NCBI GenBank assembly: GCA_020536535.1
Contig: JAHLWZ010000643.1
Span: 1 to 32,307 of the forward strand
DNA length: 32,307 bases
Direction of reading: 5' to 3'
Origin: Pelomyxa schiedti
Lineage: Eukaryota; Protista; Evosea
Shown here: positions 1 to 25,260 of the stretch, piece by piece
Layout: every line of letters begins with the position of its first letter
Numbering within the stretch: position 1 is the first letter of the stretch
Notes under the pieces: model-generated
Told to the model about the DNA's origin: nothing
Seen by the model: the letters and a program-made list of their open reading frames with translations, nothing else
Database searches by the model: none
Program-made: the position numbers and the translations under genes

Positions 1-895
1 AGATTAGTTGATTATATTCCAACCAGAAATCCCACACTCAAAACTGTCACCTACACCAATGTAATTCTTTACTTCCTTCGATGTGAGCAACTTCTCTTCA
101 CTTTATTGACCCTCATAATATAAACAGGTGATCCAGATAGGTGTCTGCAGTTAATTTCAGCCTGGGAATCCCTGTTTGACGTTAAAGAAATTTTCATTGC
201 TATGAAAACTATCACTCCAACTGAAAAACGTAAATTGGGTATCGCTCAATTGTAAGTGTTAGGGTTTTTTTTCCCACCTCTAACTTCCTTGAGGTACACC
301 AACAACGCCTACAAAATCGCAGTATGTAATTACCAAGTTACTAAAACCTCACAATAGAAAGGATCCAGAAAAACAACACCAAAATATCATTGAAGCACAA
401 GTTGAACATTTGAACGCCACTGTGTCAGAGTTGAAAACGCAGAAGGAGCTTGTTGCCAATCTGCAACAAGCTCTCAAGGAAGAAGCTGCCAAGTCCAAAA
501 CATACCAGGTTTCCTCCTCAAACCAGTAAAAACACTCACTCTATTCTGCACCCTCCTTCAGGCAGACGTGGCAGAGTTGCAGCAGCGTAACGAACGGGTT
601 CCAAATCTTCATTCTAACATAAACGAACTAATTCCTTTTTACACACAGCTCCAACGTGAAAAGAGAGAAACAGAGGCAGCACTCTGTGAAGAACGAATTT
701 GTGTAGCCTCTCTGCAGAAAAGTCTCAAGGAAGAAGCTGAGAAGTCCACAAGATACAAGGTTTCATCCTCTCAACTCAAGTGCCACCACCCATTCAACAA
801 CAACACACAGGATGTTGTCGACACCATGATATCACTCATTTCAGCAACTGCTGATGATTTCAGGGTTGACAAGCTCCTTGGGACAGGCTCAAATG
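1..895 (+). repeat. Near-identical partial copy (allele/haplotig or recent tandem paralog) of 1699-2595, covering the Vps41-like, coiled-coil and kinase N-lobe exons; truncated by the window start and the gap
   Basis: Aligns by eye to 1699-2595 with about 8 substitutions, one 3-nt exonic indel (AAC) and three non-triplet indels (5, 5 and 1 nt) that all fall in predicted introns. Ends at kinase motif LLGTGSN, immediately before the N gap. Confidence 0.9.
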
Positions 896-995
896 NNNNN
901 NNNNNNNNNNNNNNNNNNNNNNNNNNNNNNNNNNNNNNNNNNNNNNNNNNNNNNNNNNNNNNNNNNNNNNNNNNNNNNNNNNNNNNNNNNNNNNN
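896..995. other. Scaffold gap (100 N, true size unknown)
   Basis: Run of exactly 100 N. Confidence 0.99.
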
Positions 996-2022
996 TGTCC
1001 TACTGGCGTACATTGAAGAGAACACCGATCCCGAGGGAAGACCTGTTGTGGTGCCAGAAAGGTTGACAGGCACACAATAAAGTTCGAATTTACATGCCTA
1101 CAGGTACCACCCAGAATTCAGACTTATGTCAAGAGGTGGTAGGGAATTTGTATCTGATGCAATAGATGTTGAAGGATATAAGGACTATCACGTTTGTGAC
1201 AAAATCGATGGTTTTTCTATTTTAAAGCAAAAAGTAGGCAACAGCATACAGACTCGAGTATTCACTAGAGGAGGCCATGTTCTTTTTGGTGGCACCAAAG
1301 GATATCGTTGTTGCCAGACCCCGAGACATGGATGACCACATTGACTGGCTACTTGAAAAGCACAAGTATCATCCTCCGGGTTGCCCAATTTTCTATCCTT
1401 TCTAGATTTGCTGAAGCACTCATGGAGTGTGAACATGAAACTCCAGAAGGCGCCAAGAAATATGCCCGAATTGCGGAGAGCTATCTGAATGACTTGATTT
1501 GTAGGTTACATTCACCCAAATGCTACTCGGTCTAACACTTAACAGCAAAACAAGAGTACACCAAGGCTGTAAGAGTTTGTGTTGAAACTTTTGGCTCTGA
1601 TCCAGAACTGTGGGAAAAATGGATCATAACATTTACAGAGCTTGGACAGTTGGCGGTAAATTCCACCACCAATTAATAGTGTACCAATGTCTATATAGAG
1701 ATTAGTTGATTATATTCCAACCAGAAATCCCACACTCAAAACTGTCACCTACACCAATGTAATTCTTTACTTCCTTCGATGTGAGCAACTTCTCTTCACT
1801 TTATTGACCCTCATAATATGAACAGGTGATCCAGATAGGTGTCTGCAGTTAATTTCAGCCTGGGAATCCCTGTTTGACGTTAAAGAAATTTTCATTGCTA
1901 TGAAAACTATCACTCCAACTGAAAAACGTAAATTGGGTGTCGCTCAATTGTAAGTGTTAGGGTTTTTTTTCCCACCTCTAACTTCCTTGAGGTACACCAA
2001 CAACAACGCCTACAAAATCGCA
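996..2022 (+). CDS. VPS41: Vps41 (HOPS subunit)-like segment: end of the beta-propeller and start of the alpha-solenoid/clathrin-repeat region; 5'-partial; runs into the kinase exons downstream
   Basis: GT-AG introns at 1062-1103, 1192-1237, 1366-1405, 1501-1545, 1656-1698 and two more before 1992. Spliced: ...RYHPEFRLMSRGGREFVSDAIDVEGYKDYHATAYRLEYSLEEAMFFLVAPKDIVVARPRDMDDHIDWLLEKHKFAEAL...LWEKWIITFTELGQLARLVDYIPTRNPTLKTVTYTNVILYFL...AQLYT. This closely matches Vps41 (SDAL.V.GF / FYIVSPRDVVVAKERDQDDHIDWLLEKKKYEEAL / LWE...F...GQL..I..YLP). Confidence 0.85.
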
Positions 2023-2067
2023 GTATGTAATTACCGCACCAAGTTCCTAAAACCTCACAATAGAAAG

Positions 2068-3730
2068 GATCCAGAAAAACAACACCAAAATATCATTGAG
2101 GCACAAGTTGAACATTTGAACGCCACTGTGTCAGAGTTGAAAACGCAGAAGGAGCTTGTTGCCAATCTGCAACAAGCTCTCAAGGAAGAAGCTGCCAAGT
2201 CCAAATCATACCAGGTTTCCTCCTCAAACCAGTAAAAACACTCACTCTATTCTGCACCCTCCTCCAGGCAGACGTGGCAGAGTTGCAGCAGCGTAACGAA
2301 CGGGTTCCAAATCTTCATTCTAACATAAACGAACTAATTCCTTTTAAACACAGCTCCAACGTGAAAAGAGAGAAACAGAGGCAGCACTCTGTGAAGAACG
2401 AATTTGTGTAGCCTCTCTGAAGAAAAGTCTCAAGGAAGAAGCTGAGAAGTCCACAAGATACAAGGTTTCATCCTCTCAAGTGCCACCACCCATTCAACAA
2501 CAACACACAGGATGTTGTCGACACCATGATATCACTCATTTCAGCAACTGCTGATGATTTCAGGGTTGACAAGCTCCTTGGGACAGGCTCAAATGCAGCT
2601 GCGTTCAAGGTGCAACATCTCACAACAATCAACATGGCAGAACCACCAAATTTGTCGGCTTCGTTGAGTGGTGTCGCAGCAACAACAGCAGCAATTACAA
2701 ACAGGAGGGGAGACATGGTGATGAAGGTTCTGTTCAACTGGGAGAACACACCACGGCAGACAATGCTGAGGCAGAAATACATGGCTGAGTGTGTGATCCT
2801 CTCGTTGCTTCCGAATCACCCAAACGTGATCCACCCTCTTGGTGCCTTGGTTCTCCCTTGGTAAGTTTTTCCACAGTCTAATCATTTGATATTGCTATTG
2901 ACCATGGCACGCCACACAGCCTTCCAGCAGAGTTTGTGGAGAAAATTCCAAGTGACAAAAAGTATTTCAGAGAAGAACTGTGCAACAACAAGTCACTTGC
3001 AATCCTCATGCCCCATTGTGGAATCACACTGTCATCGTTCTTCTCTTCATCATCCTCCACAAACAAGAGTACGGCTGAGGACGCTTTGAATCTCTTTGTT
3101 CAGGGACTAGAAGCAGTCCACCACATTGAGTCACATTCCATTGTTCACAGGTATGTGCCTCCTTGAAGTCGAACTGTTTACTGAAGGCCCTCAATCAGAG
3201 ACATCAAGGAAGACAACATTCTCGTCGACCCCACAACTGGAAAACTCACCCTGATTGACTTTGGCGAGGCTCAGCACTGCCCCGCGACCAACACCAACAT
3301 GGAACTCTCAGTGTCGGCCACGACACAACCATGGGGCAACGCAGGCACGATGCCACCTGAGCTCAGCACATTCCTGAGGGCGCTCCCGAGGGGCACAAGC
3401 GGTGTGTTCTCCTTCTCGAAGTGTGACTCTTTCGCGCTTGCCCTCACGTTCTGGGATGCTCTCCTGCCACCATCCCACAAGTTCATTGGGAGCACAATGA
3501 ACCACAACATGGGCGCGTTCAACACTCGGTCACTCCTCACCGAGTTCCCTCTCCCCTCGTTGTTTCCTTCGACCTCAACACCACCATCACCCACAATTGG
3601 CAGCAACGGGACACCTGAGATCACCTTGCTTGCACAAGTTATGATTGGGATGATGAACCCTGACAAGGCTGCCAGGGTCTCTGCTGCCGATGCCATCTCA
3701 TCACTCAGGAAACGAGACAATGGGTGCTAA
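2068..3730 (+). CDS. Coiled-coil plus PINK1-like Ser/Thr protein kinase (3' module of the chimeric locus 996-3730)
   Basis: Spliced exons give a heptad-rich region (EAQVEHLNATVSELKTQKELVANLQQALKEE...), then the Gly loop LLGTGSNAAAFKV, VMK lysine (MVMKVLFNWE), HPNVI, catalytic HR|DIKEDNILV, DFG and WGNAGTMPPELS...SKCDSFALALTFWD. The MKVLFN, GN..TMPPE and SK.D motifs resemble PINK1 (IKMMWN, GGNGCLMAPE, YSKADAWAVG). Stop TAA at 3728-3730. Confidence 0.85.
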
Positions 3731-3832: not shown

Positions 3833-4644
3833 TTAGACCATCTTGACGAACTTTGTGCTTGGAGCACCGCAAATCGGGCACTTGGCTGGAGCCTCCCTGG
3901 CGTACTCGATGTGGCCGCACACGGGGCAGTACCAGATTTCTGTGTAGTATGGTGTTGTTAGTGAATTGTGGGTTGTTGGTGAAGTGAATTTTAAATTATT
4001 AACATTCGAAGGGAAGGAAGTTATGGGTGGGTACGAACCCATGGTCTCCAAGTCGGAACCAGAGGCTAGCCTGTCGAGGGCGGTTTGGAACAGATTGGCA
4101 TGCACGCGCTCTGCCTTGGTTGCAAATCCGATCATGACTTTGCCGGGGTGATTTTCGCGTTGTGCCTGCTCGAGCATGGGTGGGTACATTTCGGTGAACT
4201 CGTAGGTCTCGCCGGCTACTGCGGTCTGGTGTTTTGGGGTTATGGGATGTGCCGGTTTGTTTGTGTAGGTTCGTGTTTGGTTTTCAAATATTATAGTTTT
4301 TTTGTTGAATGTACCTTGAGGTTTTCAAGGGTGGATTGAACACCGCCCATGTTCTGGAAGTGCCCGAGGGCATGAACGGTCTCTGCCTCAGCGGCAGCAC
4401 GGAAAAGCTTTGCTATCTATTGCTCGTTAACAGGTTATAAATGAAAAAGAAATTATGTTAGAAGTACCACAGGGAAACCCTCTTGCTCGGCCTTCCTTGC
4501 AAAAGCAAGGTACCTGAGCAAGAACAATTACTTTTAAAAAAAAAAGTAATAAAGAATTAAAAAAAATTACTTGCGATTTGCTTGACTTTCACCAGCAAAC
4601 GCAATTTTTAGGTTCTCAACGGTTGGTGATGGTGTTGACGACAT
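3833..4644 (-). CDS. rbr: Rubrerythrin (di-iron four-helix bundle plus C-terminal rubredoxin-like domain), 5 exons
   Basis: ATG at 4644; introns 4514-4570, 4417-4467, 4226-4314 and 3940-4038. Spliced: MSSTPSPTVENLKIAFAGESQANRKYLAFARKAEQEGFPVIAKLFRAAAEAETVHALGHF...TLENLKTAVAGETYEFTEMYP...AERVHANLF...EIWYCPVCGHIE...APAKCPICGAPSTKF. All di-iron ligand motifs (GESQA, ExxH, GETYE, ExxH) and two CxxC motifs are present. Confidence 0.95.
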
Positions 4645-23200: not shown

Positions 23201-25260
23201 TCTCATTTGACGCCCAAAAGAGTTGGTTTCAATATCAGTGCAACTTTTTCTTCCTACTTACTTGTGATTGTACCGCTCACTCTGCTACCAGTTTTTGTTC
23301 TCTATCCTTACAAGACAGTACATTCCTTTTTTTTTTTGTTTTCCCCTTATGTTGAAAAGATGCTTGGATATTTAGCCACTGACGACGAAGTGACTAACTT
23401 CCAGGAATTTCTTGGATGCTTGTTTTTTATTCAGCTTATCATTCAAGTAAATATAATTATATCATCTTGACTGTGACCAACTTCCATTAGTCTGCATTAC
23501 AACAGCCTGCCCTGTGCCTTATGAACATTTCATTTCTGAGAACAGTGATTTCGCACCTTTTTAAAAGGATGTTCTGCTTTTCATGTTATGGCTGTGGTTC
23601 AGACGACGGAGCCTGCTTTTTTGGTGCCGAACTAGCCCTAAAGCTAAAAAGACTCAGCAAAGACAAGCCAGCCTTCGACTTTTTGTTTCACTGTCTGCTT
23701 TCTTTATCGTAATAAAGACTGACTGGGTTTTTTAACAGATATACTACAGTTGCTTATTCTGTCTCTAGCGCTGCAAGCCTCCACCTTCTTCCCATTGATC
23801 CTGCCTTGCTGTTGTCTGTACTTTGGTCTTCAATGGTTTGTAGACAAGTATAACATCCTTTACGTCTGCAAGCCAGTACCCAACTCTCCTTCGCTGTTAA
23901 AGTAATCCCTTTCCAACACAATAGGCAATCCCCTAACGTTCCACTCAAGGATTGCGTCATGCTGTATGCTTCTGTCAATCACAAATTCCTGGATGGGAGC
24001 AATGTATATATCATACCTAACGGAAAGGAATTACAAACTTGCAACCGGCCTCTCCGTGGCACTTGTATTCCTTGCAATTGTCTTTGCAGTTGTGCTCAGA
24101 GTTGGATTACGCTGCTGGGGAGCATGCTGTGCCTGTTGTTTTGGAGAAAAATTCTGGCAATCTATCCCTGTGTACGGACTTGCCGGGACTCCAAGACACA
24201 CCCACGCAAGACGGAGCAGAGGGATGCNNNNNNNNNNNNNNNNNNNNNNNNNNNNNNNNNNNNNNNNNNNNNNNNNNNNNNNNNNNNNNNNNNNNNNNNN
24301 NNNNNNNNNNNNNNNNNNNNNNNNNNNTTACGCTGCTGGGGAGCATGCTGTGCCTGTTGTTTTGGAGAAAAATTCTGGCAATCTATCCCTGTGTACGGAC
24401 TTGCCGGGACTCCAAGACACACCCACGCAAGACGGAGCAGAGGGATGCTAGACAGTGACCTATTTGCCAGCTTCCGGGGATTTGAAGGTATCGAAGCCGC
24501 AGTAGCGGCCAACCAACCCAGACCCGCCGGACCCTTGAATGATGACTACGTGCGATTCAGGACCCCGAACAGGAACAACGACAACTACGGCGAGGACGAT
24601 CACAGTGACGGCAGCTCTTCCTCCTCCAGCACAGCCACAGCCACATCCACATCCACCGCATCATCAGCTTCTACTACCGCATCAGCAGCACCAGGAGATG
24701 TGTGGGTAGGAGAAGACAATTCGCCGGAAGAAATGACAGCAGAGCCGCTTCTGCCCAGCACACAGCAACAACAACAGCAGGCCACAGCCAACAACAACGC
24801 GGCGGCGGCGGCGCCGGCTTCCCGCGGAATCATTCTCGGCGGAGTGGACAATGATGACATGGTAGAGGACGACCTCGCCACCCACGCCGTATTCGAGGCC
24901 ACGGCGCAGAAGGTGGCGGCGCAGTACCGCATGCCCGTGGACCTGTCCGGCTGGGACACCGGCGACGAGGACCAGCCCGCGTACCACCCCGCGACGGCGC
25001 TCCGCCACACCCTCAACATGTCATACAACATAGGTGGCAGCAACACCAGCGCCGCCAGCACCGGCAACATCACTGGGAGAAGCAACTCCACAAGCCCACC
25101 ACCTCCGGTAAATCAGGACGACGAGGACAACAGCGGACCACCTTCGCACAATAGAACGCCATCATCCGCACAACAAACACCAACACTAACAACAGCTACC
25201 GCAACAACCGCAACCACAACACCAACAGTCACAGAGGAATTCTGGCAGCCACGGGACTGA
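20229..25260 (+). CDS. OSCA/TMEM63/CSC1-family mechanosensitive cation channel with signal peptide, ~350-aa extracellular N-terminal domain and long disordered C-tail; interrupted by a spurious gap
   Basis: Signal peptide (VIAVLVLIVARAACG) and frame-consistent splicing from the ectodomain into TM0 (AITLLLGSAILLLGVISWIMHV), then FFRWFSIFIKLPISK|VAQRSGVDAALYL, PSDYTVWIKGVP, TGVALATF and WAPAPSDLLWENL, followed by multiple TM exons. Stop TGA at 25258-25260. Confidence 0.88.
24107..24448. repeat. Exact 121-nt duplication flanking a 100-N gap (unmerged contig overlap; assembly artefact)
   Basis: 24107-24227 is identical to 24328-24448. Collapsing the copies restores one continuous frame (VGLRCWGACCACCF...RSRGMLDSDLF). 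Confidence 0.9.

Follow-up and report, generated by a model that had tools for sequence, protein, structure and literature searches.

The locus at 996-3730 of contig JAHLWZ010000643.1 from the anaerobic amoeba Pelomyxa schiedti, which was analyzed within a window of 32,307 nucleotides (nt; positions 1 to 32,307 of the forward strand), is a real and recent exon-shuffling chimera at the DNA level. It joins the 5' half of a gene for Vps41, a tether subunit in the HOPS complex (for homotypic fusion and protein sorting), to exons for a coiled coil and a PINK1-like protein kinase (Table 1). The locus may also be a working gene for a Vps41-headed kinase, although the sequence evidence for and against this is evenly poised. 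Coordinates are window positions, counted from the start of the contig (C643), unless another contig is named. The assembly comprises 52.37 Mb in 5337 contigs, of which C400 and C612 are referred to repeatedly; L017 denotes C400:20000-29568, L014 denotes C612:48966-50558 on the minus strand and L013 is a stretch of C612.

Structure and breakpoints of the chimeric locus

When a 31-nt vestige of two parental exons is skipped, a chain of GT-AG introns links 23 exons into a frame of 1129 codons with no stop, which encodes, in order, a low-complexity N-terminus, a propeller, the first third of an alpha-solenoid, a coiled coil of ~100 residues and a kinase. This joined model served only for frame, heptad counts and the ratio of nonsynonymous to synonymous substitution rates (dN/dS), and the homology searches were made with single exons or database proteins. 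An initial annotation of the window, made from its letters, had described Vps41 exons followed by a coiled coil and a kinase. This holds, with seven collinear exons at 996-1949 and matches to the TPR_Vps41 and Pkinase profiles. The extent it gave, 996-3730, is right at the kinase stop codon but not at the other end, as the start of the gene lies on C400 and 1-995 is a scaffolding artefact.

The upstream exons match Vps41 profiles exon by exon. Those on C400 match Beta-prop_Vps41 above the Pfam cut-off (best 45.5 bits; positions 22-276 taken together), and in a profile search of the genome's own contigs 1530-1658 matched TPR_Vps41 positions 7-49. The TPR-like/CHCR alpha-solenoid is incomplete, with TPR_Vps41 matched only over ~4-118 of its 333 positions at the fused locus, and the RING-H2 finger is absent, with the kinase in its place. 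A separate full-length Vps41, for which the initial annotation had suggested that the genome be searched, was found on C612. This intact parent has a propeller and TPR_Vps41 positions 4-289, both above the Pfam cut-off, and then a RING-H2-like C-terminus. Since it sits there at 92% nt identity (92.6% in amino acids) to the fused copy, the latter is a recent partial duplicate. The two genes share the ATG, the low-complexity N-terminus, the whole propeller, the first ~118 of 333 TPR_Vps41 positions and the first 17 intron positions, which are identical, but the fused gene has a coiled coil and a kinase instead of the distal solenoid and RING-H2 finger. Its exon 17 is still collinear with the parent, whose next exon carries TPR_Vps41 from position 119 on.

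Three further loci (C690:61407-62907, C806:98809-100814 and C848:16383-18631) match the entire TPR_Vps41 profile above the cut-off with no Beta-prop_Vps41 match, and may be diverged Vps41/Vps8-type paralogs.

Table 1. Features of the chimeric locus and of its Vps39-headed counterpart.
Feature	Position	Strand	Remarks
Copy A, second haplotype of 1699-2595	1-895	+	Vps41 exons 16-17, vestige, coiled-coil exons and kinase start; assembly bubble
100-N scaffold join	896-995	.	Flanks non-identical; spurious gaps (C400, 24228-24327) have identical ones
Vps41 exon 11, 3' part	996-1061	+	Exon begins on C400; L017 8048-8161 matches Beta-prop_Vps41 238-269
Vps41 exon 12	1104-1210	+	In-frame GT-AG chain; 92% nt identity to C612
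Vps41 exon 13	1269-1365	+	Most conserved Vps41 motif (...PRDMDDHIDWLLE...); mostly identical to C612
Vps41 exon 14	1406-1500	+	GT-AG chain
Vps41 exon 15	1546-1655	+	Start of TPR-like solenoid; Pfam TPR_Vps41 13-47, E 0.006
Vps41 exon 16	1699-1780	+	Pfam TPR_Vps41 positions 50-74
Vps41 exon 17, last intact	1826-1949	+	Phase 2 end, ..GVAQ plus two bases; GTAAGT donor at 1950
Hybrid intron, 114 nt	1950-2063	+	GTAAGT donor (1950) and AG acceptor (2062-2063); holds vestige and breakpoint
Vestigial 31-nt exon	1992-2022	+	Stubs of Vps41 exons 18 (first 16 nt) and 19 (last ~15 nt)
Vps41 intron 19 remnant	2023-2061	+	2012-2061 matches C612 at 86-88%
Coiled-coil exon 18	2064-2214	+	No close relative in DNA beyond its own haplotypes
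Coiled-coil exon 19, 12 codons	2268-2303	+	Similar ..RN[ED][QR] exon end in C223 paralog
Coiled-coil exon 20	2354-2464	+	77-78% nt identity to C20 and C223 paralogs; heptad signal
Kinase exon 21	2511-2860	+	N-terminal helix, glycine loop, catalytic Lys (..VMK..), alpha-C Glu, low-complexity insert
Kinase exon 22	2920-3150	+	Pkinase 69-122; ends ..VHR (HRD start); HR|D splice also in annotated paralogs
Kinase exon 23	3199-3730	+	Pkinase 123-258, E 6e-6; D of HRD, DFG, PPE, C-terminal helices; stop 3728-3730
Vps39-headed kinase	C1405:3300-6640	-	Loci L018-L021; protein KAH3731563.1

Removal of the hybrid intron joins exon 17 in phase to the coiled-coil exon at 2064. As the initial annotation had stated, there is neither a spacer nor a new start between the two parts, only these 114 nt with no ATG-led exon among them. 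It had placed the end of the Vps41 sequence at ...AQLYT; Vps41 does stop early in the solenoid, but this string spans an intron and its YT comes from the vestige. From the parent the locus retains, after exon 17, intron 17, stubs of exons 18 and 19 and most of intron 19. Alignment to C612 shows that a deletion of ~200 nt fused the two stubs into the vestige and left both splice sites of the vestige intact. In copy A, the second haplotype at 1-895, a further 3 nt are deleted within the vestige and 5 nt within 2023-2061.

Both breakpoints could be mapped. At the 5' end, no more than ~8 nt ahead of the ATG are still homologous to the parent. On the 3' side it stops at ~2061, ~10 nt short of intron 19's own acceptor, which puts the breakpoint at ~2062. 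The breakpoint in the kinase gene lay in a coding exon, because the matching stretch of a Sel1-headed paralog on C223 is the 3' end of its head exon, and the acceptor at 2063 is the AG of a former AGA codon of the kinase gene. In the haplotype on C400, a 153-bp in-frame deletion (equivalent to 1948-2100) has taken out the intron, the vestige and 13 codons, so that it reads ...GIAQVEHLN... as one continuous exon. The locus thus has the marks of a chimera made by partial duplication, namely an intact parent elsewhere, two mapped breakpoints and a frame that is open if the vestige is skipped (constitutively so on C400).

On this evidence, a partial Vps41 duplicate, running from a few bases before the ATG to ~10 nt before the end of intron 19, was joined mid-exon into a family kinase gene, where it replaced the original head. 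A new acceptor at 2063, in phase with Vps41 exon 17, arose from the end of Vps41 intron 19 and the AG of the kinase exon. A recent exon-shuffling product with a captured Vps41 5' half was one of the two readings put forward in the initial annotation, and it is supported by the parent on C612, the mapped breakpoints and the occurrence of the kinase cassette, with other heads, at a minimum of 40 loci. The other reading, a working kinase targeted by the Vps41 propeller, is about as likely as not. Whatever the function of the locus, it offers a clean and datable case of exon shuffling, in which the parent is present, each breakpoint is placed to a few bases, a 3' splice site has been newly made and later deletions have trimmed the join. 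Young chimeras of the Drosophila jingwei type likewise have an intact parent whose 5' part was recruited as the N-terminus for the catalytic part of another gene. Here, however, the duplication took place at the DNA level and did not involve retroposition; all introns were kept, and the two parts meet in a hybrid intron.

Downstream of the join, the predicted coiled coil has L, I, V or M at 56% of its a/d positions, against 37 +/- 4% in shuffled sequences (0/1000 shuffles as high), and only one Pro and no Gly in 105 residues, and the necks of the paralogs on C223 and C20 contain a homolog of its exon 20. The glycine loop, beta-3 Lys, alpha-C Glu, HRD and DFG motifs of an active kinase can all be read in exons 21-23, of which exon 23 is 64-78% identical to P. 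schiedti paralogs. With these motifs intact, as they are in the paralogs, the kinase looks competent.

Haplotypes and assembly around the join

The DNA was obtained from seven whole-genome-amplified cells that were amplified separately and then pooled; it was assembled by SPAdes in single-cell mode (k <=121), scaffolded by P_RNA_scaffolder with RNA-seq read pairs and annotated with Augustus and PASA/EVM (PMC8887013). Amplified DNA, single-cell-mode assembly and RNA-pair scaffolding are a setting in which the join might be a chimera of multiple displacement amplification or a de Bruijn mis-join, and scaffolding artefacts are abundant at 1-995 and in the gaps of C400 and C612. An artefact of either kind is nevertheless considered highly improbable. 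The sequence is contiguous across the junction, and the nearest gap is 950 nt away. Three versions of the locus carry it (1699-2595, 1-895 and the tail of C400), which are 97-99% alike and each have their own substitutions and indels. Because three diverged haplotypes, beyond what a single chimeric molecule can yield, carry the same junction, it is not a product of mis-assembly. The junction has moreover evolved since it was made, through the ~200-nt and 153-nt deletions and the 3-nt and 5-nt indels.

Copy A is 99.1% identical to 1699-2595 and the indels between them are confined to non-coding stretches. At its two ends, stretches of 121 nt match 1699-1819 and 2475-2595 without a difference, and 121 is the largest k-mer of the assembly. 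As its path runs between the same two k-mers, 1-895 is a second haplotype put upstream by the scaffolder. The contig C400, which carries the 5' half of the gene with its ATG and propeller, is identical to 996-1116 over exactly 121 nt (L017 8098-8218, 100%). After a second gap (L017 8219-8318) it continues with the third version, which is 97.1% identical to 996-2413 and whose last 121 nt equal 588-708. The first gap of this contig (L017 7180-7279) is spurious, since its 121-nt flanks are identical. A tandem duplication of the fusion gene, with 1-895 as one copy and 996 onward as the other, was also considered; it was rejected in view of the exact 121-nt shared ends, the identity of the C400 tail to 588-708 and the recurrence of N-chained haplotype contigs on C612.

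Gaps of 100 N representing scaffolder joins were noted at 896-995, 24228-24327, L017 7180-7279 and 8219-8318, L013 2905-3004 and L014 4866-4965. Some of them have identical 121-nt flanks, which means that the true gap is negative; others string alternative haplotype contigs in tandem and mimic partial gene duplications, at the fused gene as well as at the parent Vps41. It should therefore be borne in mind as a practical matter that RNA-pair scaffolding in this assembly lines up haplotypes in tandem in a manner that looks like duplication. Such joins hint that the contigs are transcribed, but no weight was given to this. A third copy of the Vps41-type propeller, L014, ends at a gap and at the contig end; it is 94-95% identical to the fused gene against 90% to the parent, and may be the propeller of a diverged C400-type haplotype.

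Splicing and constraint

It is possible, although less likely than not, that the young chimera gives no fusion protein. The vestige would then be spliced in and translation would stop after ~680 codons, with decay of the transcript or a truncated Vps41 as the outcome; the locus would be on its way to becoming a pseudogene, with a frame still open because of its youth and not because of selection. A number of observations favor this alternative and weigh against a working fusion. When the vestige is spliced in at both ends, the reading frame is shifted and runs into a TGA at 2097-2099. With scores of 5.4 and 5.3, the splice sites of the vestige equal or exceed the fusion acceptor (4.5), and the introns that would flank the vestige, at 42 and 41 nt, are within the usual range of the gene, whereas the 114-nt intron that skips it is an outlier beside the other 21 introns of 35-59 nt. 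From sequence alone, inclusion of the vestige is at least as likely as its skipping. At its birth the junction was also out of phase with exon 19.

The 5' side of the locus and the divergence of its haplotypes point the same way. The native promoter is absent from the duplicated piece, because homology to the parent begins so close to the ATG, and a remnant of 88 nt from the 3' end of another kinase lies ~90 nt upstream of the fused ATG. No protein encoded in the window, and no gene model for the locus, was found in word-index protein listings spanning 97-308, 436-1388 and 287-912 amino acids (97-1388 overall), which is a weak negative, since a model may simply be missing from the collection. 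Exons and introns diverge to about the same degree between fused-type haplotypes (2.0% vs 1.7%), so that exons are no more conserved, whereas between parent-type haplotypes exons are the more conserved (1.9% vs 4.3%). Finally, the changes private to the C400 variant (~11 nonsynonymous to 4 synonymous) are concentrated in the most conserved Vps41 motif. This variant (L017 8319-9569; equivalent to 1132-1330) shows about ten private amino acid changes in exons 12-13, and its exon 14 has lost 12 nt in frame. The private changes could be due to relaxed selection, to gene conversion from an unseen copy or to adaptive change.

Against the absence of a fusion protein stand the 1129 codons, which contain neither a stop nor a frameshift and in which all exonic indels are multiples of three. 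Two separate deletions removed frame-breaking sequence at the join, the second producing a continuous in-frame exon, and a kinase with a Vps39 head, described below, is a precedent that has long been retained. Comparison of the Vps41 part with its parent also indicates some constraint, with 5.3% difference in exons 2-17, 8.4% in the introns and a dN/dS of 0.35 (95% confidence interval 0.21-0.57). Three indels (9, 3 and 6 nt) separate the exons from those of the parent, and 14 were counted in introns of half that length, 12 of which are not multiples of three. This depletion (P = 2.7e-4) was discounted, as T-runs in the introns probably inflate the baseline and the test overstates constraint, another point that tells against a working fusion.

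Nonsynonymous and synonymous changes were assigned to branches by parsimony on three-way alignments. They amount to 12:6 on the propeller branch of the fused copy, 2:3 on the L014 branch (taken as fused type, an assumed assignment), 4:4 in exons 11-17 of the window lineage and ~11:4 in the C400 variant. The pooled terminal branches (29:17) give an omega of ~0.47 that differs from neutrality (P = 0.012) and counts against a locus without a fusion protein, a result that depends on the assumed assignment of L014; the two branches known to carry the join give 15:8 (P = 0.10). With such mixed evidence, constraint on the Vps41 part looks relaxed, though not necessarily lost.

The initial annotation had the sequence turning into coiled coil within one short exon. 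Such a read-through is open in the window haplotype, where retention of 2023-2063 keeps the frame, but the 5-nt deletion of copy A breaks it.

It was also considered that the locus gives two products: a truncated Vps41 head independent of HOPS, possibly a decoy for Arl8/Rab7, and a kinase translated from the Met in ..DTMISLISA.. (exon 21) under an internal promoter. That Met is conserved in the paralogs just ahead of the N-terminal helix of the kinase, and inclusion of the vestige would cut the Vps41 frame early. Two products are nonetheless improbable, seeing that family members have the head, coiled coil and kinase within one annotated protein, that the coiled-coil exons are open, in phase and without start codons, and that the 114 nt between the two parts leave no spacer for a promoter.

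A kinase family with exchanged heads

Searched against 1.84 billion representatives, the last kinase exon matched only 53 proteins at E <= 1e-3. The named members that were checked are all from P. schiedti, except one protein from Mastigamoeba and one from Tulasnella; P0028, which is unnamed, comes from a Logan assembly. At least 40 paralogous loci with 68-75% nt identity were counted in the P. schiedti genome. Membership of the present kinase in this family is clear from exons 21-23, which are 79, 70 and 76% identical to P0009 (alignment A3), and near-invariant columns of the family include K73, E94, H191/D193 and D212-F213-G214. In P0007 and P0008, both from P. schiedti, the kinase query matched in two or three stretches, with two Pkinase stretches in each protein, and these two appear to carry tandem kinase domains.

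The heads of the family are highly varied. Most members have Sel1 repeats, and others have ankyrin repeats, leucine-rich repeats (LRR), Ras/Rho GTPases, VWA, MORN, SH3 or an INTS5_C-like domain. The initial annotation had suggested a search for other N-termini on this kinase cassette; such N-termini exist, Sel1, ankyrin, LRR, GTPase, VWA and Vps39 heads all being present. Paralogs headed by Sel1, ankyrin, LRR or GTPase domains (P0009 and the C223 locus among them) share with the fused gene the coiled-coil neck, a helix with ..M.SLISA..DF.., the catalytic motifs and a helix with ..MMNPDKAAR.SA.DA... They differ in that the repeat head is usually a single exon together with the start of the coiled coil, whereas the head here is part of a trafficking gene with 17 introns. 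Since the first coiled-coil exons relate closely only to their own haplotypes, the kinase side of the chimera is old and the Vps41 side young.

A profile of the family matched PINK1 best in the PDB (E 1.5e-14), single exons having given no match there by phmmer. For an AlphaFold model of the nearest annotated paralog (pLDDT 85), the ten best Foldseek matches were chains of PINK1, with kinases of the CaMK group close behind, and the margins of PINK1 over Pim-1 and CaMK were small. PINK1 is therefore the nearest relative by both profile and fold, as the name given in the initial annotation implied, and 'PINK1-like' aptly expresses a resemblance, although the two are not orthologs. The family model aligns with PINK1 (7T4M, 7MP8, 8UDC, 9EIH) at a TM score of ~0.6 over ~390 columns that include the terminal helices; PINK1 is also activated as a dimer. 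The identity is however only ~17%, and P. schiedti has only reduced mitochondrion-related organelles. Neither a mitochondrial targeting sequence nor a transmembrane segment as in PINK1 was found, the N-terminus being the Vps41 head here and Sel1, ankyrin or other heads in the paralogs.

The closest counterpart to the fused gene is a P. schiedti protein of 1126 amino acids annotated as 'vesicle fusion protein' (KAH3731563.1, P0019), in which CNH, Vps39_1 and a Vps39 solenoid are followed by a coiled coil and a kinase. The head is 48-72% identical in amino acids to the canonical Vps39 (C889:42119-45060), and only the latter has the C-terminal zinc finger. As the identity is no higher than this, the Vps39-kinase fusion is considered old and yet intact. 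Both genes have the same kinase family and neck behind an N-terminal head of a HOPS-specific subunit that does not bind the HOPS core, with the C-terminal zinc-finger region replaced. They differ in that the Vps39 head is kept nearly to its C-terminal domain and that the gene is annotated, has long exons and shows no frame problem at the junction. The C-terminal 148 amino acids of Vps39 bind Vps11 (PMC2185595). The WD40 domain of VPS41 binds Arl8b, its RING is required if VPS18 is to be bound and HOPS assembled, and RING-less VPS41 R662* still reaches endolysosomes (PMC11809577). By sequence comparison, both HOPS-specific subunits have thus lent their N-terminal parts to one kinase family, each minus the part that binds the HOPS core.

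If a fusion protein is made from the Vps41-headed gene, the kinase would be addressed by the tether subunit's own Arl8/Rab-binding propeller. The propeller is predicted to bring the protein to membranes of the Arl8/Rab7 type on late endosomes, lysosomes or phagosomes, and because the distal solenoid and RING are missing, the protein would stay out of HOPS. The coiled coil may pair two kinase domains for trans-activation, after which the kinase could phosphorylate local substrates. That an architecture of head, coiled coil and kinase can be kept is indicated by the intact, older Vps39-headed gene. The large kinases of the LRRK2/ROCO group have repeat or GTPase heads and reach endolysosomal membranes through Rab-family GTPases, but their heads and kinase subfamily are unrelated and the likeness is one of functional analogy only.

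The presence of two HOPS-specific heads on one kinase family points to regulated fusion of phagosomes or symbiosomes with lysosomes, in a host that lives with intracellular bacteria and methanogens. It may be speculated, though the odds are against it, that P. schiedti has made targeting heads for PINK1-like kinases from both HOPS-specific front halves, and that the products sit on Rab7/Arl8 phagosomes, lysosomes or symbiont vacuoles outside HOPS, where phosphorylation controls lysosome fusion. If so, the lineage would have a switch of its own that bears on how its bacterial and archaeal endosymbionts escape digestion. The literature yielded no paper on the kinome of Pelomyxa, nor any on a kinase fused to Vps41 or Vps39.

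The neighborhood of the locus contains other genes and one gene fragment. Upstream of the fused ATG, L017 4560-5660 carries a Ser/Thr phosphatase gene of the PPP family, followed at L017 5950-6110 by an isolated 3'-end remnant (~90-160 nt) of a family kinase that is 87.5% identical to 3620-3707 and whose stop is separated from the Vps41-type ATG by only ~27 nt. Before the Vps41 piece came in, an array of kinases may have stood here. A simple tandem duplication, with the kinase gene upstream and Vps41 downstream, was considered as the origin of the chimera and does not fit, as the gene after the kinase is one for rubrerythrin and nothing more of a kinase than the 88-nt remnant precedes the ATG. 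This rubrerythrin gene (3841-4640, minus strand) has several exons and a rubredoxin-like C-terminus (CPVCG...CPICG), and it lies tail to tail with the kinase, the two stops being ~110 nt apart.

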